A stretch of DNA of 63,720 nucleotides, counting the filler, from Lenisia limosa (Eukaryota > Protista > Breviatea): assembly GCA_001655205.1 (NCBI GenBank). It is 14 parts of 14 records of this genome, joined end to end, with 100 filler letters (N's around TTAATTAATTAA, not from the genome) between each part and the next. Parts side by side here need not be neighbours in the genome. Positions count along the whole stretch, not along the records: positions 29,381 to 33,541 come from LPNZ01008789.1; 13 more parts are not named here. One strand, written 5' to 3'. Positions 15 to 40,300 of this stretch are shown piece after piece. Position numbers and translations under genes: made by a program. Position 1 is the first letter of the stretch. Each line of letters begins with the position of its first letter. A model generated the notes under the pieces. That model searched no databases and had not been told where the DNA came from. It was given only the letters and a program-made list of their open reading frames with translations.

Positions 15-1460
15 TCAAAACCTTGACGCTCTCTTCTTCCTCAGCCTCGATTTTAACTTCGGTCTTATCCTCGCTCTCTGTTTTTGGCTCTTCGGATGAT
101 GGAGATTTTGCAGGTTGGTTATCGGGAACGGGGGATGAGGAGGGAAGGGGGAATTGGTGCGCCTGGATTTCGGGTACAGGTGACATTTGAGGCAGCTGCA
201 AGTCGCTCTATGGGTGGTGAGAGGGCAAGGCGCTCTAAGGATGGTGAGAAGGCAAGTCAATGCGAACTCTCTGATGAAAAAAAAATCATTACCTGGCAAA
301 ATATGGTATTCTTCTACCCGCAAACTGGGACAATTTTCGACAAATCACTTGCAAAGAAAGGGTCATACGGGTGTCCCCCAGCCTTGAGAATGAGAGTACT
401 CCCCCCATCCCGTGCAATTTATTTCAGAAGTCAGTTTAAGAGTTACACGTATATACTTTCCAATATCATCATAAAACACTTGTTTTCAATTTGACAATGC
501 ACTTACAGTGACTGAGATAAATCTTGACCTATTTTCCTTGGGAAATCATAGAGCAAATGGTCAAGTCTTATTCCAGTCACTGTACATGATATGCTGTGTG
601 TGGTATATTATACGAAATGAGAATACCCCTCCCCACTGCCGAAATGTCATTGATGGGAGTGTTGTTCGCCAAACTCTGGATTGTCAGAGAAGTAGGCCAA
701 AAGTGCTTCTATTTTTGTGGTTAGTATCTGAAATCATACGGAGAAATTAAGTAGGGCTTCACTGTGGTTCCAAAAAGACCAGTAAAATATCGATAGTTTT
801 CGAGGATTTATCGAGAATTAATTTTTGAACCGAAGTAAAGCCCTATTAATAAGGTAATTAGCTCCCCTCATACGGTAATGGCGACAGGGATGGGAGGAAG
901 ACTAGCCACTAATTCGGGAGGAAGAGTATCTTCAAATGTGAAGTCTGCGGGAGCTGCAGGGGGGGGGGGGGGGGNNNNNNNNNNNNNNNNNNNNNNNNNN
1001 NNNNNNNNNNNNNNNNNNNNNNNNNNNNNNNNNNNNNNNNNNNNNNNNNNNNNNNNNNNNNNNNNNNNNNNNNNNNNNNNNNNNNNNNNNNNNNNNNNNN
1101 NNNNNNNNNNNNNNNCGCATTGACTTGGGATTCTTATGAAAAAGCGCCCACTATTTACATGGGGAAGCCCATGTGATTATACGGAAATTTGAAGATTATG
1201 GGATTCCAAATACAACATGGGAATCCCAAGTCGATGTGCCGTAGGGATACACCCGTCCTACTCATAGGCGAATAGGACTCGAAAGACGGGAATGGGGAAG
1301 CTCCTCGGAGGGATGATGGTGACGGAGAGAATGATCCTGAAAGGTTCCAAATAAGACGATATTATCACGGTATTTTTGGGGAACGTAAACCACGCCCTCA
1401 TCTTTGGTGACTAACCTGGGCGGAAGTCTGTGGAAAATGAGGGGTCATTTGGGCCTGAAA
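15..1460 (-). CDS. Uncharacterised multi-exon gene fragment (Pro/Ser-rich)
   Basis: Minus-strand exons with GT-AG borders, e.g. PADFTFEDTLPPELVASLPPIPVAIT (~875-955) and KHFWPTSLTIQSLANNTPINDISA (637-708); no family recognised. Confidence 0.4.
752..845. mobile_element. MITE family A (hAT-like, ~95 bp)
   Basis: TAGGGCTTCAC...GTAAAGCCCTA terminal inverted repeats; internal TCGA-rich core shared with 11 other copies; intronic. Confidence 0.85.
1118..1236. repeat. Small inverted-repeat element (MITE candidate)
   Basis: CATTGACTTGGGATTCTTATG (1118-1138) pairs with CATGGGAATCCCAAGTCGATG (1216-1236), 3 mismatches. Confidence 0.6.
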
Positions 1461-1870
1461 TTATTAGATCCCTCGAAATTCATCCTCGAATTTTACTCCT
1501 TTTTTTAACAATCAAAATTGAGTTAATTTGAAAAACAAGGGTTCAGTAGAAACATTTAACGTGGATTCTATGCCATCGTGTTTATCTGAAAACGGCCACA
1601 ATTACCATCATCAAATCAGCCCTTACCTGAGAAATCCAGAGTACTTGAATGCTCGCTCGTGCCCATCAAATTNNNNNNNNNNNNNNNNNNNNNNNNNNNN
1701 NNNNNNNNNNNNNNNNNNNNNNNNNNNNNNNNNNNNNNNNNNNNNNNNNNNNNNNNNNNNNNNNNNNNNNNNNNNNNNNNNNNNNNNNNNNNATATGAGG
1801 GTAAATAACAGCAAAAATCAACTTTGGGGAAAATAAAAAAAAGAGGTTTTAGTGAATAGTGTATTATACC

Positions 1871-1970
1871 TAGAGCTTCCCTACGGTCCCAAAAAAGACT
1901 GAATTTCTTGATAAATCCTCGATAAATATCGATATTTTACCGGTCTTTTTCGGACCGTCGGGAAGCCCAA
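1871..1970. mobile_element. MITE family A copy
   Basis: TAGAGCTTCCCTACGGTCC...GGACCGTCGGGAAGCCCAA; flanks ATTATACC/ATTGCACC (6/8 TSD). Confidence 0.8.
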
Positions 1971-2035
1971 ATTGCACCCATAACCCCCTCCNNNNNNNNN
2001 NNNNNNNNNNNNNNNNNNNNNNNNNNNNNNNNNNN

Positions 2036-2047
2036 TTAATTAATTAA
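2036..2047. other. Artificial scaffold-joining spacer (one of 13)
   Basis: TTAATTAATTAA (stop in all six frames) embedded in N44 on each side; also at 7751, 17110, 18574, 20979, 29325, 33586, 35916, 37214, 42015, 58323, 59799, 61777. Confidence 0.97.
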
Positions 2048-2137
2048 NNNNNNNNNNNNNNNNNNNNNNNNNNNNNNNNNNNNNNNNNNNNTATTGCTTC
2101 CCTATTAATATCGCGTACGATTACTCTTACCTCCACA

Positions 2138-3770
2138 GCACGCAAGAAGGCTGATAATGAAGCTGAAAACAGGATACAGGCGATCGGTATGATGCCGACT
2201 TGATAACGTTATACCATGCATATTACAGCTAATATAGCATAAGGGATCGGAGATATTGATAACTTTTCGATATCATTGTTTGATTTTCTGCTTTTAATGG
2301 GCATACAATATGACTGTTATCTCTTCTTTTTGCGCTTGAGAGCCTGTCCATTCCCAAGTTTACATCTTCAGAATCTTCTATTCCAGCCCTTCAAGATGCC
2401 ATATATGAAGCACTCCACGCCGATATCGGAACAGCGCTGGAAGAGGTATGCAATAGGAACATGGGACGCTCATTTTGACTGTTTATCCACTACTTTCTTG
2501 TTAAATTTTATTGCGTATCGTTCTTATACTATCAAATTCTGTCAAATTAGACTAGTATTTTCGATGTGTTTACAATATGCAAGTATGATGAATTTACGGT
2601 GTAGATGGCGACACACCAGGAAGATACATTCAACAGTTTGGTTGCAAAAAGGCTTCCGTGGGAGGGGTTACTTATTAAAGCCTCACTTTCGGACCTAAAA
2701 TAAATATAAAACAATCTCGAAGTGTATTCAAAGTAAAATTTAATTCTTTATAACCGAAATGTTCCAGAATGTCAGCTGAACCAGTGAAACAAGAAGAATC
2801 ATCTTCTAATTTTCATTAATGCTGATATTTTTTCGTATCAATTAACTAACCACAAGTAGGGATACCAGAGAAGTCTCAACCGACCTTCATATTCTGAAAA
2901 AAGAAGTTGCGACATTATCTGCAACAGTGGAACGGCAGCAAGCTCTGATTGGAAAGCTGCTCCAGAATTCTGTTGGGAGGGGAGGGGGATTATGATTTAC
3001 AAATAAACTATTGTGCAACATCCACATTAACATCTCATAGCACCCGGACAACGCCGTACCTTCGCACGTGCTGGAAAATAATCAGAACCATATTGAGACG
3101 TTGGCCTCCTCGCGCAACGCCAGCACGCCTCAAGTGGGTGTGGAATAGGGCTTCACATCAGTCACCAAAAATGAATTTTGTCAATAATACTCATAGCTAG
3201 CGATACTTTTGTGTCTCAAAATACACCCTGCTCCTTTTTTATCGACTCTATTCTTCCTTTTCCGCTTCCTTTTCTCCATTCCATTTACGACCCACCCCCC
3301 AGCAGAGGAAAGCATCCGAAAAACCACCGGCCCCGCGACTCCTGAATCCGAAGCTGTCGCCAGTTATACACCCCGCAGGCCCTCTGCCGGAGATACCACA
3401 AAGTGGGGTGACGTTCAGTTATTTACCAGATTTATGAGGTTCTGCTATTCAAAGTTGAGGATTTCCCTCCATATCATAATACATAGTATGTGTTTACAAT
3501 GCAGATTTCAATATATTTGTTGTATTCTACTCAATTCCCCACTTCCCTTGTTTCACACGTCGCAGGAAAGAACCTGACAAAACTAACGTCTCGCTTTGAA
3601 TCCATCGTGAGAGAAATGGTAAGTAGTTTGTTTTAATTTTTATGCAAAGCAATGAATAATGGATCGATATTGGAGAAAAGTGACTGGAGATATCCATGAA
3701 CGTTCTGCGTGAATGTACCACCTTCCACCTTATCCTTTCAGCAAGGACTTGAACAGAGTATCACAAGGAA
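2138..3770 (+). CDS. Uncharacterised multi-exon protein with coiled-coil segment (partial)
   Basis: GT-AG bounded exons SLSIPKFTSSESSIPALQDAIYEALHADIGTALEE, DTREVSTDLHILKKEVATLSATVERQQALIGKLLQNS, EESIRKTTGPATPESEAVASYTPRR, GKNLTKLTSRFESIVREM. Confidence 0.5.
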
Positions 3771-4269
3771 GCCTACACCCTCTATTTAATTAATTATGTA
3801 ACATAGCTTCCTGCGTTGTAGAACTGCTAAAATATATTTACTAGGACTCAACATGTTGTAGTTTAACCTTGCTAGGCCAGGTTATACATGATCGTACAAA
3901 ATTATCCTTTCAATAATACAATTTAAAAATAATAATACAATGTCAAAAGACGAGACAATTTCAAGATCAAATGGTCAAATTGTCCTTAGCAAGGACTCTT
4001 TGGTACCAGTTTGGTACATGTACATGTACATGTATTCAAACGAATATACATTCTTATGATAGAGTTGACTTCCGATCAGGGACGTCCGTCCGAGCTATAC
4101 CGTAAAAAAGACAAGGATATAAACCCACGCCGTCACCCATTATTTGTAAACTGTGATACAGTGCTGCATTGTTAATCCACAGTATCAGTTCATTAGCTGT
4201 ATATTTCCAACATAATTCCTTTTATATACAATAGAGGGAAGTGCAATTACGTAGCACTCTAATTCGCGC

Positions 4270-7200
4270 CTCTCTCACAATCTATGATTGTATCCAGATG
4301 TGGAGAAATGATTGATAATAATTGTCCGGATCTTTCTTTGACTTCAATATATCCCAAATTCACCAAATTGAGAATAAAAAACAACATAATCATCAACATA
4401 ACATATTTACAATATCTTTTTAGAACACGCTTAGATATTTAGCGAAGGCCATGAGCCGTTATCTTGACATCTTATCGCGTGATCGTTTAGTGTGGAAGGT
4501 CCCATTGTCTTAGCAATTAAGTAAAAATGATTCAAAGAAGGCAGAAAGGCGATTAAGTAAAAGGGAAGCTAATAACACAGTTTAGAACGAGATATATCAG
4601 ACATGTATTATGAATATTATATGTATGCATGTATCGATATGTATGATAGTATATATAGAGAAATGAGAAAACCAAGATTGTATCTGGCCTGTATACCAAA
4701 TACTATTCCTTATTTCATACCTGGATTGTACAAATTGTTTCCAGAGTTGGTGACGCTGAAGGACAGATGATATTGTAAGATTGGTAGTCCGGCAATGGGT
4801 GACAAGGAAGTACTGAATGTTTACAATTGCACTATTGATAATCGTCAACTGTGTAGTTAAATACCCACTTTTTAGGGAGTTTGATGGCAAGATCGAGTAG
4901 CCTTGAACCCACGCGGAACTGGTAGTGTGAAGCATCCGTTTTAGTTTTATTTTACCATTGATATGCAAGTCCTATGAGTAGATTGATGCCCCAATAATCA
5001 CGATTTCAAATATTGACAAAAAAGAAGAAAGAGCTCTCTGAGATTGCCTTACTTTGACGGAGTATAGCTGTCTATCCACTCTGTGTCAACTTTTAACTTT
5101 GGATAAGTTTCCTCTAACCAAGGAAAAACTAAAGATTTTAGGTTCATAAAAATGATAAAACAATTACACTAAATGACAAAGATCTTCTCTTTTACCTAGT
5201 TGAAAGCTGAGCTCCTGAGTCGAACGATCCCACTTGTCCTAATGAGATAAATTGGAAAAACGTCATTTTGTGGCTTATCAAGTGAATTTCAGTTGTAAAT
5301 AAGTTCATATCCATCATTAATAATCTAGTTTGTATTCAAAACAATAAGAGATTCATCAAACCTCTGATATGGGACATCCGATCAAATTGGATTGACATGG
5401 AGTAATGAAAAGGCCAGGAGTTGTACCATGCTGAAAGTAATAAAACGTCAAGTGTTTCATTGACCTTATATTGGTCATTTCATTGTTCTACTCAAAAATG
5501 GAACATATTTTCAGTAATTTATAATCTGGATTTCACGAAAAGTAATTAACATTTCATTTTCAGCTCACAATAAAATCCACTTGGGAATGTGTTTTAGAAT
5601 CAGGAACTGCGAAGTCGGGAGGACTACAGACCCAAAGAGTAGCGTCACCTAGTACACCAATATCAGCACCCGACCTAAATAATTATTTTCTCTTTTTAGT
5701 TTCAATTTCAATTACCAAAAGAATCATAATAGATCATTATATATCCTATAATATGATGTATATTACATGCGTTTTTCTAAATAAACTAGAAAAGATATCA
5801 TATCATATGCGTATATTTTAATATTGTAGTGTTTTCCTATTTTAACTCATCAAGGTTTACATTTAATGGTGAATATTCACAAACATAAGAAGTAATTTCT
5901 GCGGTTTGTCAAAAGCAGCAAAGTCGTTATAAACAAATGTTGCTTGCAGTGTTATGAGTAGAGTACTGTCAAGTGTGTCATCTCTGGATGAGTAAGAAGG
6001 CAATCCTAAAATTCTTATCGTTTACACACCCAATCAGTGGCCAGGTTGGATCTTGGAGTTCGAAGACAGAGTCAATCAGGGTCAATGGGGGCCAATATTT
6101 ACTTATTAGTACGCCAGAACTAGAGTCAGCGCCCTGTCAGGGTTAATTTCAATGTTGAATTCTCATTATTTGTATTGATCCAAATTGAAAACTATGAAAT
6201 TGTAACACTGGAATATGTAATAAAACAGTTTAGCCGAATGTATCAGAGTTACGTTTTGGCGTATATCCTTGCGGTCCTAAATTAGGTCATTAATTGTTAT
6301 TTTGAGTTTTAAAGCCGCAGAAACCAGTTTTCATAACACATCAATTTCTGAGTTGTTTTGGGTTTTTCGGGGTTGTGTTTTTTTCACGAACAGCGTTTTG
6401 GATGAGTTGCGTGCCTTTTTCCGACTAAAAAAGTTAGTGGCCATTATAAACGACTCAAGTAGATTTAGTGGAATCCAAGGCTAAATAAGCAAGTTGAAGA
6501 TAAAAATCAACACTTTTCTGTGAAAATTTCTGTCATTACCGAAAGGACTTGCCTTCTATGGAAAAACAACGGAACATTCCAAAAATCAGTATTTTATTAA
6601 CATCTTTGACAGGTTTCGACTTAAGGGAGTTTACATAGCGGAAACAACTTTCTATAGAAAGTAATTGCTACATTTTGATGATTTTGACAGAAATACAATT
6701 TTTTGGGGTTTTTGGCCAAAAACCACAAATTTGATGACAGCTTATTTCGAGCCTATCTCAAAGATGTTAATAAAATACTGATTTTTGGAATTTTCCGTTG
6801 TTTTTCCATATTAGGCAAGTAAGTCCTTTCGGTAGTGATAGAAAGTTTAACAAGGAATGTTGTTTTTTATCTGCAACTTGCTTATTTAGCCTTGGGTTCC
6901 ACTAAATTTACTTGAGTCATTTATAATGGCAACTAATTTTTTTAGTCGAAAAAGGGCATGTAATTCATCCGAAATATTGTGAGTGAAAAAATTAAATTTG
7001 AAAAACTCAAAATAACCCAGAAATTGAATGTGGTATGAAAACTGGGCTAAAAATGGATTTTTGCGTCTTTAAAACTCAAAATAACAATTAATGACCTAAT
7101 TTAGGACCACGAGCATATGAATATATCACTGCGGCTGAAATGTAGATCGATGAAAACGACCAAAATATGGATAGAGCAACACAAAACATCCAATAGCTAA

Positions 7201-7964: not shown

Positions 7965-8550
7965 TGTCATTTCGGAAGAAAAGTCAATATTCCACATTAT
8001 CTCTTGTTGTCGGAATAATGATCCTCATAACGGCACTTATGAAGTTTGGAGGTGGATATTAAGTGTTGGATAGGCCTCAATTGTCAATTAATGTTTCCAG
8101 CTTTTTCTCAACCCTTGTAATAGAAGACCCCGAGTTTGTTCCATCTTCATTCTTTGCTTCGATTTTTGTATGCAAGGGAATGAGGTCGTTTCTCGCTGAC
8201 TTTTAGATCCTTCAAATTGTGTCCTTTTTCCTTGTACTTCTCGGCTACATTTATGCACATGAGGCCCGCGCCATTACGAGGGAATATGNNNNNNNNNNNN
8301 NNNNNNNNNNNNNNNNNNNNNNNNNNNNNNNNNNNNNNNNNNNNNNNNNNNNNNNNNNNNNNNNNNNNNNNNNNNNNNNNNNNNNNNNNNNNNNNNNNNN
8401 NNNNNNNNNNNTTTAATTTTAAATCTAGGAGTAAATGTTTTGTCGTTAATAGCTCGTGTGGTCTACGTTTTCGTGTACATTGATTATCATCCTTCTGACT
8501 ACTCGTCGTTTTGACTCCGTCTGTGAGCAAGGGTTTGGGGGTTCTATTGT
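7965..8550 (+). CDS. Putative multi-pass membrane protein (partial)
   Basis: Spliced reading RKKSQYSTLSLVVGIMILITALMKFG-EDPEFVPSSFFASIF-ILQIVSFFLVLLGYIYAHEARAITREY with hydrophobic helices. Confidence 0.4.
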
Positions 8551-29280: not shown

Positions 29281-29399
29281 NNNNNNNNNNNNNNNNNNNN
29301 NNNNNNNNNNNNNNNNNNNNNNNNTTAATTAATTAANNNNNNNNNNNNNNNNNNNNNNNNNNNNNNNNNNNNNNNNNNNNGGTCGAAAATTGAGTAAAT

Positions 29400-32300
29400 A
29401 TCATAATGTATATTTGGACGACCGTCATGTGGAGAGTGAATTGAAAAAATTGCTATGTGTCTGGGAGGAAGGTAACTGAAAAACAAACTGCTCTCTTTTT
29501 TTGGACATCAAGGAAGCCCTACTTGTAACCCTTTTATTAGATCTCTGACGAATACGAGGACATTTTGGAGAACCTTAACAAGGCGGATACCAGGCTTGAA
29601 GAAGCCCTCACGTGGGGGGTGTAACCCTAGATATAATATTATTAATTGTTTTAATTTTGTGTAATTTTTAATATTTAAGGTATTTCTTTGCTCTTAAAAA
29701 GGGGCTTTGATTACTCCGTTCATTTTTTATTCCTCACTTCTACAAACATACAGTGACCGGGATAAGTTTTGACTGATTTGCTATGCTGTATGATTTTTCA
29801 AGGAAAATCGGTCAAGGCTTATCCCGGACACTGGGCATATTACATATTATCTCAAGAATCTCTGGAGCAAAGATCGAGTTTTTGAGCCTCACTTTGATCC
29901 ATCCTTTCACAAACGAATCGAACTTGTACATCTTTAATTGTGTTTCATTTCTGCCATATTCACATTTGAAACTTCCTTCTTTTTATTCATTATCCATCTC
30001 TGGAGTGCTCTTTCCTTTCTTAGCTGCCCTTCTTTCTTCTTTTGTTCTTTGACATGTTTCCTTCATTCTAGTCTTCGAAATACAAGTGACATTCGACACA
30101 ATATACCCAATCACATGAATGTCAATAAAAGTGATATAACATATAAATAATATTACCTAGGGAAGAGGCGGCGCTCAGACGGCATATCTCCGACCTCCAG
30201 GAAAAAGAGAACAGAACAAAAGAGGCTGTAGCCGAGGTTGAGGCTCGGATTGCTCTGGCTCGGATAGAGGAGAAAGACGCACGAGACGACTCAGAAATGG
30301 TATTAGGGGGACTGCTTAGCCTAGTCATTGAATCGAAAAAGAATTTTAACGCCGGCGTTAGAATAACGTGAGAAATTGACAGACTGAGGGGATCTATTCA
30401 TATAAGGGGGATCGTGTTTTGCTAACCAAAATTGTTGATTTTGTCATAAATTTTCCACTTTTATCGTGTTTGTTGTTACCTGTTTTTTGTTTGGAGTTTC
30501 AGATTATTCGGTTCGTAATTAGTACCTTTACGGCTAATATTCTTCATCGAAATTTCCTTCGTTTTACACCCCCCCCCCTCAGGTTAACAGGGACCTGAGT
30601 CGACTGAGGGAGTCACGGAAGGACATTGAAGAAGAGTCCCTCGCCCTGGCTGATGTACTTGATAAACTGAAGGTGGGTGGATTGGTATGGAACTCAAATC
30701 CAATATCTCTAAAAAGCGTGCGTGATGGTGTGGGCGGCTTCAGCCAGATACTATAATCCAATATCCCTGATAAGCATGATGGTGTGTAGACCAGATACAA
30801 CCATATTTACTTTACTATTATCTTTATTAACGTGATGAAGGCTTCGACCGGATACAAACTTGTTTAATTTCTCATCCCAGTGGTGATGATTTTAGGAAGG
30901 AATAAAATTCGTCCACTTATCCTAAGTCAATTTGAAACATTATACCAGTCTATGATAAAAACCTTTAATTCCCGCAGAAAATCATCCCAGGAATACAACA
31001 ATATTCCCTAAATACCTGCAGATAATACCAAGAATATAACACTGTTCCTTTTGTAAAAAGAGCACTATTATCCCACCTATCCCACCTCCATGGTTTGTTC
31101 TGCTTCCAAATTCACCACCCCACCACCCCTCATAGAAGGAACACACGACTGTTTTGTCATCTCTTGCTGCGTCTACCAACCATGCTGAAGAGGCCCTACA
31201 AGTGGGGAGGGGGGTACCATTGAAGAGGGCGTACAAGTGGGTAGAGCTTCACTTTCAGTTCCGAAACACCTATAAAATATATCGGGGATTTATCGAGAAT
31301 TCAGTCTTTTTTGGAACCGAAAGTGAAGCTTTACAAGTGGGGAAGGAATCTATTGAATTGTAGTTTGCGGTGTAGGGATGGTGATGGGTAAGACATAAGC
31401 TCTGATATGTATAATATGCAGAAAGCAGTGAAATGGTTTATAATCAGATTTCTGCACCTTCTCCACTTACCATATTAGGAAGTTTCGCACCTTGTCGACA
31501 CCGTCGGAGCAGACGAAACAGCGCTCTTTGCGTCATTGGACGCCACGCGCTCGCTCAGAACGCAAGCTTCTGCACTGCAGGAGGAGGCGGAATCGTGGGG
31601 GAGGGGGATATTCTTTTTTTTTTGGGGGGGGGTTCTCATCTCTTTTTTATGGTCTGTGTATCGGAGTTGGGGTTTTATTGTGGTTGAGGGCTCTCACTTA
31701 ATCTTCACTTCGTTTCNNNNNNNNNNNNNNNNNNNNNNNNNNNNNNNNNNNNNNNNNNNNNNNNNNNNNNNNNNNNNNNNNNNATACCAATATAATATCG
31801 ATACTTTTCGATGATTATTCGAATAATTCAGGTTTTGTTGTTATCAGCCGTCGTGTATTGGCAGCAAACAGAGTTGATTTTGGGCTATATTTTTTTAATC
31901 CCCCTCCAGTGAAATGCAGGAAGCCCGAAATCGACTAGAAGCTGTCATAGCAAAAGCCGAAGACACTGAATTGATCTACCATGTGGGGGGGCCAGGTATA
32001 TTACTTAATGGTTTGCACGCAGAAAGCTGTGTACACAAAGTTGTAAGGCAAATGATTGGGTGAATTAATATAATACTATAATTAATATCGCTTATAAGCG
32101 TGATANNNNNNNNNNNNNNNNNNNNNNNNNNNNNNNNNNNNNNNNNNNNNNNNNNNNNNNNNNNNNNNNNNNNNNNNNNNNNNNNNNNNNNNNNNNNNNN
32201 NNNNNNNNNNNGATCCACAAACTCAGTATATTTTACTCAAAATACTCCAAATTCATCATAAAACTGATCACTCGGTCAAAACTAGGGCTTCACTTACACA

Positions 32301-33541
32301 CCGAAGTGAAGCCCTCGTCATAGCACCATAAATCTATCATAAAACTGATCACTCAGATCACCTCACAAGTCGTTGAAATGGTCAACAATCGAGACCTTGG
32401 CCCGACTGATGACGTCACCGTGCTGGCCGGCCGGACCTACGACCAATTATGCCGCGATGCGGGGTGGGGGGGGGGAGGGGTAACTGGAAACGATATTTTT
32501 ATAATAATTATAAATAACGGACTACGTGCAGTAAATTTTTTGGAGAAATTAATTGACATTGAAATCAAAATGTCTGAAATTGAGTTTACATTGCGTTATG
32601 TCGCACTTCAAATTTTGTAATTATATATAGTATTCTAAATTAATTTCACGGAGCTCAAATAATAACGCCATCATTACGGCTTCACTTTGGTTCGAAAAAC
32701 ACCAGTAAAATATCGATAATTTTCGAAGATTTATCGTGAAATTCAGTCTTTTGCGAAGTGAAGCTCTACTTACCATTATGGAATACTTCCCCCCTCACCC
32801 CTTCAGGCAGGAGCCGGAACATTTGAGCTACGGTCACTCTCAACAAAACTCATCGGTAAGGGGATGACGGGATAAAATGAGCTTTATTGTTCTCTGTTGA
32901 TATTGTTATGTTGATATTTTATTGAAAGAGGGAATACAAATACATAATTGTTTTCTTTTGTTGAGGATGATCATTTACCTTCCAGGCCGACAGAGGCGAC
33001 TATAGAACGCGACTCTCTGAGGAAAACGTGAGTTTGCTTTTGTGCTCTGTTGCTGATGTCAAAAAGCGTTTTCACCTTTCTTTATACATTTTCAGTTTAT
33101 AATAAATACAAAAACAATTACTTCTCATCCCTCCCTCTGTCATTAAGTGTTTGAAAAGTGAACTAATTATAACTATCCTCACTCATCCCCCCAGTCCCCT
33201 CCCGTATTGAATCGGCCGTCTACATTCGACTCAATCGGAGCGGACGTCTCCCATCTTCTTGCAGGTGTGTGTCCTTCACTTCGGTTCAAAAAAAGACTGA
33301 ATTTCTCCAAATATCCTCGAAAATCATCGGTTTTTTATCGGTCTTTTTCAAACCGAAGTGAAGCCCTAATTCTCTCCAATCCTCGGAAGCTCTGACTCGT
33401 ATTCTCACAACCTTATCCAGAATGTAATAGAATATTATACTTATCGAGGATTTATCAAGGATTTATATATTTTCGCCTTTCTATGTACTCTATATTTTTT
33501 CAACATGATATTATTCCTCACCTCTCCCCACAGCATCCGAG
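29400..33541 (+). CDS. Uncharacterised coiled-coil protein (partial, about 10 exons)
   Basis: Phase-consistent exons ISDEYEDILENLNKADTRLEEALT, EEAALRRHISDLQEKENRTKEAVAEVEARIALAR, VNRDLSRLRESRKDIEEESLALADVLDKLK, EMQEARNRLEAVIAKAEDTELIYH. Confidence 0.7.
29751..29832. mobile_element. MITE family C (Tc1/mariner-like, ~75-82 bp)
   Basis: CAGTGACCGGGATAAG...CTTATCCCGGACACTG, preceded by TA. Confidence 0.8.
30481..30582 (+). repeat. Intron 3'-end cassette family D
   Basis: TTTGGAGTTTCAGATTATTCGGTTCGT...CTTCATCGAAATTTCCTTCGTTTTAC-C-tract-CAG; homologous to 58963-59070 (-), shorter matches at 38842-38879 (+) and 62649-62684 (-), each ending at the acceptor AG. Confidence 0.85.
31242..31333. mobile_element. 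MITE family A copy with perfect 8-bp TSD
   Basis: CAAGTGGG at 31234-31241 and 31334-31341 flanking TAGAGCTTCAC...GTGAAGCTTTA. Confidence 0.9.
32283..32316. mobile_element. MITE family A, internally deleted (TIRs only)
   Basis: TAGGGCTTCACTTACACACCGAAGTGAAGCCCTC. Confidence 0.75.
32675..32768. mobile_element. MITE family A copy
   Basis: TACGGCTTCACTTTGGTTCG...GAAGTGAAGCTCTA. Confidence 0.85.
33269..33368. mobile_element. MITE family A copy (left end degraded)
   Basis: CTTCACTTCGGTTC...AACCGAAGTGAAGCCCTA immediately after a splice donor. Confidence 0.8.
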
Positions 33542-33723: not shown

Positions 33724-35848
33724 GTCCATGAATTAACATGTATTACGGCCGCTAGTCAGGTCCAGAAGTATGTTGTCACTGGTGATGCTGGAGAAGAAGC
33801 CATGCTTGTTGTCTGGGATGTGGAGGCAAGGTTTGAAGATGGTGTCATTTTCTTTCGCATTAATTCAAAATAGTGGTCTACATTTTATTTCATTATAGGG
33901 CACCCATCAAGTCTATCTTCCAGCCACATGGGAACGGAATTGTTGCTGTTGCCATGAGTGCTGATGCCAAGTATATCGCATCACTTTCAGCACGTAGGAT
34001 CCAATTAGTTGTACTTTGTATTAATCATCAACACTTACCTTTTTAGCTCAAAATGGTGAAGCACAAGAACTTGCTGTGTGGGACTGGACCAACTCGGACG
34101 AACCGCTTATTGTGTCAGACATTGTACCAGGCTCTTCTCTCCATGTAGGCATTTATCTTGCTTTTCGCACTCTTTGTTGCATCGTATGGTGTATTCGTTT
34201 ATCCTCTAACACACCAGCATTGTATAGTCTTCAATAAATGGGACAATTCAGAGTTCGTTACCAATTCTCCGAAAAAGGTGGGTGGATACATACAATATTT
34301 TGATGAGCCGAAACCTTTGATTTTAAATTTAGACACTTACCCTTCAGCTGACATTCTGGAAGTGGGATACGACAGGGCTAACAAGCCAATCACCAAGCCT
34401 CCGCCCTGCTGATCTACGACAGCCTGTTGCCGACCTCACGGTCACAAATTTCTTGAGTGTATGGGGGAGGGAAATGCTAGCGTTGGAGTTCCTTCTGTTT
34501 CTAATGACATTTTGGAATAGCTGTATCATAATCAACTTGTCTGAGCTTTGTTTTTCTTTTCCTTTTGAGTTGATGGTTTTAAATTAATTGTTGAATTCCA
34601 TTTTACAAAAGAGTTATAATTTTCCTAAATTTTCATTTCTTTCCAATGAGAATATTTTAATGACTTAAATCACATTTGTAGTCTTCAGTTAATTCTCTTA
34701 CCCCCACCCAGAGCGATATGGTGGTGACAGGAACGTGCGAGGGAGTTGTGATCATGTGTCAATATGCAACCGGTAGTTCCGAGCCACCAAACCCAGAATC
34801 CGGCCCAGCACTCCGTCCCAGACTTCCAGTGAAGGTAGTGGAAAGCTATCTACTTTTTTTATATGTGGGGAGAGAAAGTGTAATGCTCCAGGTGCTGCCT
34901 CTGCATAACTCCTCTGTTGTTGGCCTCTATGGGCACGGGTCTCTCCTAATTACCTGTATGCCACATGAGCAGGAAATAGCTGGAAATGGAATTCGGCGCT
35001 ACAGAGTCTGGACTTCGGTTTTTTTTTTTTATTTTTTATTTTTTTTATTTCAATCCCCTATATCTGAACTTCATAAATACCCATTACACCCCCCCCCCCC
35101 CAAGGNNNNNNNNNNNNNNNNNNNNNNNNNNNNNNNNNNNNNNNNNNNNNNNNNNNNNNNNNNNNNNNNNGTCTGACTGGCTGGGTTGAGGACCTTCAGT
35201 TGCCTGATAGGTATGTACCCAAGGGATATTACTCCAGGATCTCATGGACCGATTATATTATACTAACCATTTTGTGTATTAACTGCTTAAGAGTCGAACT
35301 CTCCAATGCCAAAGAAGGTGAAAAGGGTTGGGGTGTCAACTCAATGACTCTTGCTCCCATTCTCACTGAAGAAATCCCAATTCATGAAAAGGTGGCGAGG
35401 ATTGGACTTCCTGAACAATTTGGTTTTCTCACCAACTGCTTTTCTTTCATTATAATGATGTCGCTTCAAAATTGACTGCCCTGGGCTTTGTATACAATCC
35501 CTTTGAGTTGATTAGTTGTTTTGCTTGCTTTCTCTTTCTCTATATTTTTTTTATCCCTCAGCTTCTTGGAAATGCTAGCCTTACACCACCCGGACTTCTT
35601 TTGGCGACTACAAATGCCTTAGTTGTTGAGGTTTACAGGGCTCTGCGTTAAATTCAGAATCATTATCGTTACTTTCCGATGTAACACATCAACTCCCTTC
35701 CAACAGTGTTTAGGTATCAGCAGATAGTTGGTTGTTGTGTGATGATCAAAGTGCCTCCCCTGCCCCTACATCTTGTTCAGTACTCATCGAGGGTGACGAG
35801 GGAGCAATTCAAGCAGTTGCTGCGCATCCTTCTCTGAGCGTTTTCGCA
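33724..35848 (+). CDS. CFAP251: Cilia- and flagella-associated protein 251 (WDR66), internal fragment
   Basis: YVVTGDAGEEAMLVVWD, GTPIKSIFQPHGNGIVAVAMSADAKYIASLS, QELAVWDWT, FNKWDNSEFVTNS, GDEGAIQAVAAHP. Confidence 0.8.
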
Positions 35849-35971
35849 GTGAGGGGGAATTGGAAAATTCANNNNNNNNNNNNNNNNNNNNNNNNNNNNN
35901 NNNNNNNNNNNNNNNTTAATTAATTAANNNNNNNNNNNNNNNNNNNNNNNNNNNNNNNNNNNNNNNNNNNN

Positions 35972-36481
35972 TCCCCATCCACTCCCTGCCACAAAGTTGG
36001 CTTTGGTGCGAAACATGGTGCAGCGATGAGAGCCTCGGTATGTTAAGTCAAAAGGGTGTTGTTAAGACCAAGACATTTCTCATCTCTATATCGTCATAAT
36101 ATCTTCTGAGTTGATTATTCAGCCGACGCCAAGACTGTTGACCTCTGCAACAATCCCCTGACTAAGGTGGAATGGTGTCTTTCTTCCCCTTTTGCTACTT
36201 TTCCTGCCTCATTTCTATCCCTACCCACTGAAAGAGGCTTTGTTTTGTTGTATCAACTCTCGTGTGTTATCAGCCAAATAGTTGATTTTGTGCTCTTTTG
36301 TTTCATAAATTTTCAAAATTCACCCCCCCCCCCAAGTCTGTGCAAGTAGGCACACACCCTCAGTGTTTAATCCCCATTGACCTCATACTCCCAGGCCCCG
36401 AAACTCGACGTTGCCAGGCGGTTACTTCCCGAATGGGCCAAATACGACGCAGTGCAGCAGAATATCACAAACGCCGTCTAG
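35972..36481 (+). CDS. UGGT: UDP-glucose:glycoprotein glucosyltransferase, C-terminal exons
   Basis: [54 protein letters not shown], the GT24 signature. Confidence 0.92.
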
Positions 36482-36599
36482 AACTACTGGTATCGAGACG
36501 TCCCCCCTTTGCTGATGTCATTTATTGTTTCCTTCAATGCGTGGCGGGTGTTATATAGCAGAAGAAGGTGTGGCGGACTTTGAACCTGTTGATTATGTA

Positions 36600-36670
36600 C
36601 AGTGACCAGGATTCTTGACCGATTTGCTGGGTGATTTCCGAAGGAAAATAGGAAAATTACCCGGTCACTA
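36600..36670. mobile_element. MITE family C copy with TA on both sides
   Basis: TA|CAGTGACCAGG...CCCGGTCACTA|TA. Confidence 0.8.
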
Positions 36671-36890
36671 TATGTTTGATGGCGCGGGTAAAAAGGGAAA
36701 TCTTATAAGCACTGTGTGTGTATGGGTGGACAGTAATATCACTCAGAGGATAAAACACAAAGAGATTGAAAGTAAAAAGCAAAACCGGATAACACTGTGC
36801 TTCCAATCCACCTCGTCATTTTATTCGCTTTCCCCAAGGACCTTCCCTCGTGACAAACAACATACTGTACATTAAATGACCATAATAAAA

Positions 36891-37169
36891 CTACAGCTCT
36901 TCCTCGTAAAGCTCATCCGGGTTCTCCCTGTTAATCTTCTCGAAAAGGGTTGTGACCGACAAGCGATCTGAAAACTGGTTGTTGGACGAGAAGAAATCTA
37001 AGTTGTGAGGTTGTTGGAGGGAGAAGAAATCTAATAAAAAAGAAGAAAGCAAGCCCTCCAAACCCCCCCCCCTCTCCGAACGTTTTCTGCAGCATTTCAG
37101 GAGGTTGCAGGCATGCAGGTACTTCTCCTTTCGCTCGTCAACTGTTTCATTTTCGTCGTAGGGAACCTC
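36891..37169 (-). CDS. Uncharacterised protein, last two exons
   Basis: EVPYDENETVDERKEKYLHACNLLKCCRK-FFSSNNQFSDRLSVTTLFEKINRENPDELYEEEL-TAG. Confidence 0.5.
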   Translation of the reverse strand, partial: EVPYDENETVDERKEKYLHACNLLKCCRKRSERGGGLEGLLSSFLLDFFSLQQPHNLDFFSSNNQFSDRLSVTTLFEKINRENPDELYEEEL

Positions 37170-37343
37170 NNNNNNNNNNNNNNNNNNNNNNNNNNNNNNN
37201 NNNNNNNNNNNNNTTAATTAATTAANNNNNNNNNNNNNNNNNNNNNNNNNNNNNNNNNNNNNNNNNNNNCCCCCCCCCCCCCCATGTTTCATAAATTATC
37301 CAATTTTACTCCCCCTCCAAGGTTTATATTTTACCCCCCGCAG

Positions 37344-40300
37344 AACGCAGCGAAACAGCGTCCGCTTACCTCGGTCAAGGACCATATTCCATCAGCAGTT
37401 CGACGCAGACATTTATCCCAAACAAGGTGTGTGGACTTTGGGCATGTCCGTGGCCTCATGGCGTGTCTAACTACTGAATTGTATTTTTTTTTATTTTCAC
37501 GAACAAAATAAAAAAGGTCAATTTTGCAACTACAGACGCTTTCACGAATACCACATGGTGCCACGCTCCATCAGCAGTTTGTCAAAGACAAGGATTGCGG
37601 ATTTATGGATTGCTGAAAATGTCCCACCTTCATGCAGTAGTTATGTCCGAGTCTCTACCCAAAGTAAATATCAATGGTAGTGTAGCGTCTACAATGAAAC
37701 GTGATATGAGCATAATTTTTTCGAATGAAGGTCAATTTTTTGCAACTACAAACGTTTTGACCGATATTTTTCTTACCTGAGTGACTCCGTACTTATCACC
37801 GTATAGGCCGCAACCACGACCACAGACAGGCAATACCGCATCTGAGCGGCTTGAGTCCCTCATCAGTTTGCAGGGATTCTTCAAGAACGTTCTGATGATG
37901 GATGGTCATCTCAACATTTTGTATCTTTCACATGCCGTTCTTAATTCAACTACATATCACGCTAATAAGATTAATTAGTTTTGAAAATTGAAGTGTGCCT
38001 TTTTGTAACAAGTGAGAGCAGTGTGAAGATTTTGCAATCACCTTGATAAGTCCTGAAACGGATGTTGGGCTTTTTCTTCAGTCAACCGTGTCAAAACCTG
38101 GCGCGGTCACTGTGTATTATATACATGTACAAATCGCAACAAATCTTGTAACATTCACAGGAGATCTCCCAGATCTTCCATTATCATATACGAGGCCAAA
38201 GACTTCTCCCGAGAGGCAAACCGTCAGTGTCACAAATGGTTTGCTGAGAAGATAGTAGCTTTTGTCACTGCTCTTAACGTTTCATCCGAGACTCCCCTAG
38301 GACACTATGCTCTTCTATAAATCCCCCCCCCCTTCACATGATTTTTTTGCTTTTTGTAACAATTTTCAATTTTACTCCCCTCCTCCCACAGAACCCCTGA
38401 AATCCGCCCCTCCAGACACTATACGCCCGTCGCCGTTCCGACCAATCACCAGCACCAAAACGCCAAGAGCAGCGTCGAACCCCCGGGTTCTAAGTTTAGA
38501 ACCCTCATTGCTCCCGGACAAATACACCGTCACTACCATCCACAAGTTTGAGGGGGTATTATAGGATGTGTAATTAGGGCTTCACTTTGGTTCGAAAAAG
38601 AGTGATAAAATATCGATTTTTGTCGAAGATTTACCGAGAAATTCAGTCCTTTTTGAACCGAAGTGAAGCCCTATATTTGATATGATATGTAACACATGTA
38701 CAATTACATAATTATCATTTTTGGAGGTGTTAGTCTTGGAGAGAGCTGTAGATTGTATTCATAAATTCCTAGTTCACTCTGTTGGTGAGAAGTACCTTTG
38801 TCCATAGACATAATATATCATGTAGCATGTACTATTATATCCTTCATCGAAATTTCCTTCGTTTACCCCCCCCCCCTAGAACAAGACCGCCTGAAGCGAA
38901 CGACTCAAAGTGAGTTGGGGATGTTAAAGCAGGTACCCAAACTAGACTCATTAATCTTAATTGAACCCCAAATCCTTACTATCAGTTTTAATAAAACAAG
39001 ACATCATCTCCCCTCTTTCTTCGCTTTAACACTTTTTTATGCTAATTGAAAAACCTAGCCTTTCAGTCCCTTTCGATACAAACAAATCCTTCATATCAGT
39101 TTTTGCACTCTATTATACGGCTTCAGACTAGGACTTCACGGTTCGAAAAAGACTGACTTACTCGATAAATCTTCGAAATTTATCGATATTGTACCGGTAT
39201 TTTTCGAACCGAAGCCCTACTTCACACACAGGTACATTATATAATGTCGTGTAGGTACCATGTTGAAATGACGGGTAACAAATGGGCAGTGCAGCAGTTT
39301 CCATCACTTCAGTACGAGGATCATAAGGGCTTATCTTTTCCCGAATTTCTCCCTAAAGATGAACTCATCATTACATAAGGAGTCCCTTTTCAGTTCATGA
39401 TATACCTATGTATCGCTAGATTTTGCGTTTGTGTTTATGTACTGTGACCGAGATAAGTGCTGACACGATTGACTCAAGATAAAGCAAAAATCTGTGTTAG
39501 TACGCTGTATTGCTTTTATTCATCATTGACCTTCTTCAGACCCAGTGGACGCGAAGAAATAAAAATGCTCATTGACACTTTCGACCAGATGATTCTGGGT
39601 GAGCTTCCATGTCACATTCTTCTGGGATTAAGAGGAGTGTTGAATACCATAAAATGGGATATAAGTAACTTTTCTACACACTGACTGGATAAGTCTTGAC
39701 CGATTTGCAATGTGGTTTCCCTTGGAAACTTGGTCAAGACTTATCCTGGTCATTGTATACACCATATGATATTTATGACTGCATACAAATATTCAACTTC
39801 TGCACATCACTCTCTATAACCATTGTGTTTTGAAATTCACATTACATTGACTTTGAGTACTGTTAACCTGTGATTATTTTGTATGCCTGTTCCTGTTGCG
39901 ATGTTGCTAAAACCGTAGAATTGCCCTCAGACGAGAACCCGTCTATCGACGATCTTTTCCAGGTAAGTCGATACTCTTTTATTTGACAATAAACATAATT
40001 TAAATATAAAATAATACAAAGGGACACCACAAGATTTCGCTAACGTCCCCGCACTTCAATACACAAGTTGAACACCGAATTTCTCGATAAATCCTCGATC
40101 AATCCATCATCAATCCTCGATATATATCAATCAACAATAATGTTGTCATACATCCTCCAGGATTAAAACCCCCCTCCGTATCGATGTGGGGTTTAATGAA
40201 ACGTAATCTTTGTGTATTTGTAAAAGAGCTTCTCAACGGTCCAAAAAAGACCTGTAAAATAACGGTATTTATCAATGATTTATCGAGAAATTCCGGGGTT

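Follow-up and report, generated by a model that had tools for sequence, protein, structure and literature searches.

Introners, mobile sequences that account for a whole intron from one exon boundary to the other, have been described in Micromonas, Aureococcus, dinoflagellates and fungi (Gozashti et al. 2022, PMC9860276; 2025, PMC12130899). The screens that detect them demand similarity that begins and ends at exon-intron boundaries (PMC12130899; PMC9860276), reverse-complement similarity of opposing intron ends being accepted as a sign of insertion in the opposite orientation (PMC9860276), and non-long terminal repeat (non-LTR) retrotransposons make up about 5% of the classified introner families (PMC12130899). 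Here, we analysed a repeat at the 3′ end of intron 3 of a gene for a coiled-coil protein in the breviate Lenisia limosa (assembly GCA_001655205.1); the window, that is, the whole stretch of DNA, comprises 63,720 nt, and the piece examined is 29381–33541 (LPNZ01008789.1). The repeat resembles introners in being a high-copy mobile sequence that lies at intron ends in either orientation, in introns crowded with transposon copies, but, unlike introners, it makes up only the last 100 nt of the intron, next to a host AG and an unrelated remainder. We propose, with a probability of roughly 0.55, that 30483–30578 is an old copy of an abundant, short, non-autonomous poly(A) retroposon, which lies antisense at the end of a pre-existing intron and has taken over its splicing signals.

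Two other classes of introns invite comparison. In bridged introns, complementary simple repeats occupy opposite ends, (AC)m-(GT)n being the pair known from teleosts and (GGG)m-(CCC)n the pair known from human (Lin et al. 2016, PMC4691745). Antisense Alu and other short interspersed elements (SINEs), such as the canine SINEs found near acceptors, provide 3′ splice signals in much the same way as proposed here, in that an antisense poly(A) retroposon yields pyrimidine-rich sequence (PMC6091007). In the case of Alu, however, the oligo(T) derived from the tail serves as the pyrimidine tract and the new exons are mostly alternative, whereas in intron 3 it is the other end, the oligo-G 5′ end, that adjoins a constitutive acceptor, with the T tail situated 100 nt upstream. 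As for the mode of insertion, a comparable model is L1-type target-primed reverse transcription, with a nick at TT/AAAA, variable target-site duplications and a poly(A) tail; this mechanism is not known for long oligo-G stretches at its 5′ junctions.

Abundance and anatomy of the repeat

Part of a gene with many exons lies on the + strand of the piece, and in this gene intron 3 (30300..30582, +; 283 nt, GT..AG) separates …DDSEM from VNRDL…. The upstream exon C (30161..30299, +; …EEAALRRHISDLQEKEN…DDSEM) is an open frame of single-copy depth (35.8), its phase-0 end being followed by the donor GTATTA; the downstream exon D (30583..30672, +; VNRDLSRLRESRKDIEEESLALADVLDKLK) is likewise open. The AG at 30582 joins the two exons in phase 0, within a single open coiled-coil frame that extends over ten exons, an acceptor assignment based on frame continuity alone.

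Contigs of the DNA run that holds the locus (X1) were aligned to 30100–30750 at a likeness of at least 80%, together with those of X2, a poly(A) RNA run of that study. On this stretch of 651 bases, 3,160 contigs were placed, a count that includes a second repeat (family B, from 30697), and 1,331 of the 3,160, family B contigs included, are at least 95% alike over the fitting part. Exons C and D and the first 40 nt of intron 3 (30300–30340) have a depth of ~36 and are single-copy, and 30342–30473 is covered at 3–9 times the single-copy level, so that the 5′ part of the intron, at a depth of 36–320, is unique or low-copy, in keeping with the first-pass annotation, in which the 5′ parts of the two longest introns differ. 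Over 30474–30583, by contrast, the summed depth in X1 is 50,000–243,000, against 36 on both flanking exons, which corresponds to about 1,400–6,800 single-copy equivalents per bin; it drops to about 60 after the repeat and is back at 36 from 30584. The first-pass annotation had described this cassette as shared by four introns and had interpreted it as introner-like or a mobile acceptor. The observation is real, but its scale was understated, given that the cassette is common to thousands of loci, and the interpretation is supported as regards mobility and not as regards introner status. The copies that had been placed in AP3B, AXDND1 and the scaffold-14 gene lie outside 29381–33541; within this piece, the cassette core is present once, and no further copy was found.

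The cassette is far from chance, with the 26-nt core occurring in 0 of 100 shuffles. Four listed contigs that cover 30481–30578/80 differ from the cassette by 10–13 mismatches and 1–6 gap letters, i.e., they are ~83–89% identical to it, in good agreement with the ~85% that had been estimated by eye. The alignments of other copies have sharp left ends, at 30481, 30483 or 30486, and a consensus of T25–29 directly precedes 30483 in 52 contigs and 30486 in 53 (105 in all). On the right, the alignments stop inside a C10 run, at 30577 (52 contigs) or 30578 (130 contigs), beyond which the consensus contains more Cs and then diverges into diverse flanks (agreement 0.37), the length of the C run differing among copies.

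Read on the minus strand, the element thus consists of an oligo-G 5′ end (30569..30578, −; C10 on the gene strand, −14..−5 from the acceptor), a body of ~86 nt (30483..30568, −, antisense to the gene; ~1,400–6,800 times single copy, 68% pyrimidine on the gene strand) with the 3′ end …CTGAAACTCCAAAC, and poly(A). The T-rich stretch that precedes the body in intron 3 (30455..30482, −) probably represents what decay has left of this copy's poly(A) tail; it is not part of the conserved body because its depth is only 100–320. A sharp end abutted by a poly(A)/T tail, seen in the 105 contigs, is characteristic of retroposons, and so is the high-copy, dispersed occurrence among unrelated flanks, with some copies in tandem. 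The repeat also occurs in poly(A) RNA contigs of X2. The first-pass annotation had the ~100 bp end exactly at the acceptor AG: 30481–30582 is as described and terminates in AG, but the repeated unit stops at 30577/30578, within C10, and the acceptor AG, in TCAG (30579..30582, +), is outside the unit for this reason. Accordingly, the repeat spans 30481–30578 only and falls 4 nt short of the 3′ boundary of the intron, so that similarity reaches one intron boundary rather than both, and its T25–29 and oligo-C ends point to an antisense poly(A) retroposon rather than to an element that carries both splice sites.

Homopolymer runs and repeat junctions of this kind could, in principle, be produced by assembly or library artefacts, all the more so because homopolymers are error-prone and the N gaps of the scaffold come out at different sizes on re-assembly. 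The re-assembly in question is an 8,518-nt contig from an ENA metagenome assembly (metaSPAdes; hereafter L004), retrieved by exact match to a spurious 80-aa open reading frame (ORF) of the piece and present in one sample only. It is identical to the piece throughout their overlap, has no gap at either of the two N stretches, and extends the sequence by 4.3 kb. Two assemblies thus agree base for base, though possibly from the same reads. One single-copy contig at depth 36 covers 30551–30749 with zero mismatches and so provides a direct read from the repeat through the AG into the exon, and other single-copy contigs of X1 span 30100–30510; furthermore, the runs are polar within introns and the exon frames are intact. 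We find an artefactual origin hardly credible.

Splice junctions, GTTAAC sites and G/C runs

The repeat occupies positions −5 to −100 from the AG of intron 3. All four YTNAY motifs that lie 16–52 nt from the AG are inside it, with candidate branch-point adenines at 30530, 30537, 30546 and 30566 on the gene strand, and pyrimidines account for 72–75% of the last 40–60 nt of the intron (75% of the last 40 nt). Because the repeat fills this interval, the geometry implies that both the branch point and the pyrimidine tract of intron 3 very probably reside in it. The previous suggestion of a mobile element that supplies branch point, pyrimidine tract and AG is therefore borne out in part: the element is abundant and fills −5 to −100, but the AG belongs to the host. 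Among other copies, three RNA contigs have YAG within 3–10 nt of the C run (TCACAG, ACCAG, …GCGCAG), and a 52-contig consensus opens with AG directly after the C run.

L004 contains a second copy of the repeat, ~3.1 kb downstream in the same gene and inverted (L004 4389–4454; G13 plus 70 nt, 81% identity), which brings the number of copies viewed in genomic context to two and is at odds with the earlier claim that all copies are sense-oriented and precede acceptors. In the last intron of the gene, the donor GT is followed at 4 nt by the start of its G13 (…CACCCG/GTAT-G13-…, the slash marking the splice junction), and the C run of the first copy ends 4 nt before the acceptor AG. The oligo-G end thus adjoins a splice junction in both copies, sense at a donor and antisense at an acceptor, and the donor GT, like the acceptor AG, is outside the repeat. 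The 3′ end of intron 3 and the 5′ end of the last intron are reverse complements of each other, a relationship that involves one end only of each and two copies. Two more junction-like sites, with G12 5–6 nt after GT (CAG/GTACC-G12 and CAG/GTTCCT-G12), are found at L004 7040–7160, in a neighbouring, unannotated gene region.

The hexamer GTTAAC occurs twice in the 8,518 nt, both times just beyond the oligo-G end of a copy: the first site constitutes the first six bases of exon D, and the second lies 11 nt before G13. This placement is suggestive of a TT/AA-type target; it was spotted post hoc, with a probability of roughly 1% by a fair test. Piggybac-like ends, with TTAA next to CCC…GGG, were considered and rejected, given that the runs are not adjacent to TTAA.

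Runs of G and C are not confined to the two copies. A census of runs of at least 5 G or C in the ten introns of the coiled-coil gene (n=15) showed that 6 of the 11 G runs begin within 12 nt after the donor, and that, of the 4 C runs, 3 end no more than 12 nt ahead of the acceptor and the fourth at 16 nt. The polarity-correct intron end holds 9 of the 15 runs and the reversed arrangement none (permutation p<1e-5), and at least two of the runs in this gene are ends of the mobile element. In this one gene, then, complementary repeats stand at opposite intron ends with fixed polarity, as in bridged introns, and, as in bridged introns, G runs after the donor and C runs before the acceptor are predicted to pair and to approximate the splice sites. 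Unlike in bridged introns, however, the runs are long homopolymers (5–17 nt), at least two of which derive from the termini of a mobile element and not from the expansion of simple repeats, and the pairing is predicted only. In the minimum free energy folds, introns 3 and 5 are each closed by a stem of a G run and a C run, the 5′ G run pairing with the 3′ C run in intron 3; overall, these folds are not more stable than those of shuffled sequences (z 0.53 and −1.63). The 8.5 kb of L004 hold 11 G/C runs of at least 7 nt and five T runs of at least 10 nt, some of them back to back: T10G9 (L004 2275–2293 = window 31614–31632), T10-C-T19-AATT-G17 (L004 2735–2785) and C12T13 (L004 8061–8085). Such back-to-back homopolymers would fit oligo-G-led insertions beside A/T tracts.

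The location of the runs raises the question of whether the element seeks out, or even creates, splice junctions. If it were a retroposon-type introner or a junction-seeking element, oligo-G-led insertions would land at, or give rise to, exon-intron junctions, so that donors would read GT-(N0-4)-Gn where the copy is sense and acceptors Cn-(N0-4)-AG where it is antisense, and many GT-Gn…Cn-AG introns, possibly including intron 3, would be products of such insertions. The oligo-G end lies exactly 4 nt from the junction in both copies, in the predicted orientation; intron 3 and the last intron display the "opposing ends" signature that is accepted in the screen of PMC9860276; the polar G/C runs hug splice sites; the C run is followed by YAG in the three RNA contigs and by AG in the 52-contig consensus; the flanks past it have a consensus rich in G+C; judging from the depth, intron 3 consists almost wholly of low- or high-copy repeats; and the first-pass annotation lists three more copies next to acceptors. 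Against this, only one end of the introns is alike, the 180 nt that run from the donor to the T-rich tail being foreign to the family; both AG and GT are outside the repeat; splice sites might be recruited from a duplicated target, but no exon sequence is duplicated at the intron ends; and there are two copies in context. We therefore regard this explanation as doubtful, and the same tentative status applies to its most specific form, namely, that an oligo-G-led poly(A) retroposon inserts at exon-intron junctions in either orientation, or persists nowhere else, its sense copies rebuilding intron starts (GT-N-Gn) and its antisense copies intron ends (Cn-N-AG), so that a class of GT-Gn…Cn-AG introns with pairing ends would arise over time.

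At the other extreme, the repeat might be an ordinary intronic repeat without any role, its adjacency to an acceptor resulting from ascertainment and chance. Among thousands of copies, some must adjoin acceptors, several G runs of L004 are located mid-intron, and the intron fold does not exceed shuffles in stability. Yet each of the two copies in 8.5 kb is placed 4 nt from a junction and has the matching polarity, whereas the expectation for a copy to come within 10 nt of the appropriate end is ~3%; the association of runs with splice sites is significant (p<1e-5, as above); and the displacement of a pyrimidine tract and branch point by ~100 nt would not be neutral unless they were replaced. 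Mere coincidence thus appears improbable.

Proposed takeover of an intron end by a retroposon

Under the reading that we prefer, takeover of the end of a pre-existing intron by an antisense retroposon, the element would have inserted into an older intron 3, at its very 3′ end. The original branch-point/pyrimidine-tract region would have been replaced, because the antisense repeat is pyrimidine-rich and its C10 ends four bases before the host AG, and the incoming sequence, judging from the geometry, probably now acts as both. C10 could pair with the G5 run that follows the donor (30306–30310, +; +7..+11), in the manner of the G and C runs at the ends of other introns of the gene, and might thereby help to bring the splice sites together. 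The fixed distance from the AG would be set by the position at which the oligo-G 5′ junction forms, 4 nt inside the intron. Because, in both copies, this junction lies 4 nt from the splice junction and GTTAAC lies beyond it, a preferred target and a staggered cut are suggested: the nick would be of the TT/AA type, in a GTTAAC 4–11 nt further out than the oligo-G end, and the cut would span the junction, presumably followed by retention of those copies that took over splice signals.

This scenario shares with L1-type target-primed reverse transcription the poly(A)/T tail, the sharp 3′ end and, for each of the two copies, a TT/AA immediately beyond the 5′ junction, as well as insertion beside A or T runs elsewhere in L004. 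It differs in the oligo-G 5′ junction, in that no target-site duplication was recovered at the two old copies, and in that no partner long interspersed element (LINE) is known.

Several observations weigh against the proposed takeover. It is founded on two copies in genomic context, and the poly(A) RNA run has zero depth on these exons, so that the splice junction is without RNA support. No RNA polymerase III (pol III) head was found, and searches with Rfam and ARAGORN revealed no similarity to tRNA, 7SL or 5S RNA; with no LINE partner known, the designation SINE, in the strict sense, is unproven. Target-site duplications were not detectable around the two old copies (p 0.7–0.9). In some contigs, cassette copies are arranged head to tail or the cassette is joined to family B, so that part of the family may be a composite or tandem repeat. 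Finally, the flank consensus past the C run is 70–73% G+C, with an agreement of 0.37, and could mean that some of the copies belong to a longer element, instead of representing exons. The cassette gave no Rfam match at E≤1 and no tRNA match with ARAGORN, and it forms no stable structure (z 0.10).

Some of the same observations would be accounted for if the cassette were not a retroposon but the terminal part of a DNA transposon, a miniature inverted-repeat transposable element (MITE) or a composite, with the T and C runs internal to it. Joints between cassette and family B recur, at least 8 contigs connecting the C-run end of the cassette to family B; copies occur head to tail; L004 is crowded with MITEs; and neither a target-site duplication nor a pol III head was found. 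However, more than 100 contigs show pure T25–29 against a sharp end, as is typical of poly(A) tails, and no inverted cassette partner flanks the copy at either locus, leaving this explanation only a slim chance.

The implications of the takeover depend on how the remaining copies are distributed. If junction-hugging is genome-wide, a retroposon routinely replaces functional intron ends or makes new introns, mobile DNA is linked to the unusual G-run/C-run intron architecture of this organism, and L. limosa offers a testable system for splice-signal renewal and intron spread. If it is not, the cassette is an abundant SINE-like repeat that happened to take over one acceptor region, useful for annotation but otherwise unremarkable. 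Should the junction reading be true, it would represent a retroposon route to remodelled or new introns, distinct from the introners described so far, which are mostly DNA transposons.

The gene, its other repeats and searches elsewhere

The exons inferred from frame continuity, all on the + strand, are 29541–29611, 30161–30299, 30583–30672, 31479–31594, 31910–31982, 32811–32855, 32986–33027, 33195–33264 and 33534 onward. Pfam searches with eight exon/ORF translations returned nothing meaningful, and exon C had no match among 1.84 billion representatives. A tandem acceptor, TTCAG/GCAG/, is present at 32803–32810, and the frame is kept only by the second AG (exon start 32811). Upstream, 29381–29540 contains a 30-codon open stretch (GRKLSKYHNVYLDDRHVESELKKLLCVWEE) that cannot be joined in frame to exon B via an obvious GT…AG (29472–29540); the gene model may be different here, or a small exon may be missing.

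Copies of the cassette were also sought in other collections. An exact-pattern scan of JGI metagenomes produced one match (L001), with ~24–27 identical bases on a contig with unrelated repeats, which we take to be due to chance, as are two bacterial matches in a scan of GTDB genomes; two patterns gave zero matches in IMG/VR. With spurious ORFs as baits, the ORF crossing the cassette had no match, that of a MITE no candidates, and that of family B only itself, and the 90% clusters of the ORFs called on L004 are all singletons.

The two scaffold gaps that L004 closes have other sizes there: 31717–31783 (67 N) corresponds to 5 bases, and 32106–32211 (106 N) to 135 bases, among them a T-rich tract and a G17 run. 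L004 itself ends in a long, imperfect (ATT)n microsatellite (8250–8518) on one side and a G13 run on the other, so that the assembly breaks at simple repeats.

Further repeats occur in the piece and in L004. Family B (30697..30800, +) is located near the 5′ end of the intron that follows exon D, with a depth of 35,000–39,000 from 30716, i.e., about 1,000 copy-equivalents, and self-comparison identified other copies at 32040–32105 and L004 4494–4590, the family also being recorded at L004 2600–2735. It lies within the first 25–110 nt of three introns and ends in …GGCTTCGGCCAGATACAACC, with a T run following in 2 of 3 copies. A MITE family of ~95 nt with inverted ends GCTTCACTT…AAGTGAAGC is represented at 31242–31334, 32673–32771, 33270–33371 and 32280–32318 and at L004 6394–6491 and 7745–7780; it has at least 7 occurrences in the 8.5 kb, all of them in introns. 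A distinct, hairpin-forming MITE of ~110 nt with CAGTGACCGGGATAAG ends is found at window 29751–29833 and L004 6793–6912, and its only Rfam matches are weak, sub-threshold and microRNA-like (E 0.2–0.8). At 31186–31344, three partial right ends of the ~95-nt MITE stand in tandem and are followed by ACAAGTGGGG, and the end of exon B together with its donor (GAAGAAGCCCTCAC/GTGGGGGG, about 29595–29619) resembles that motif.

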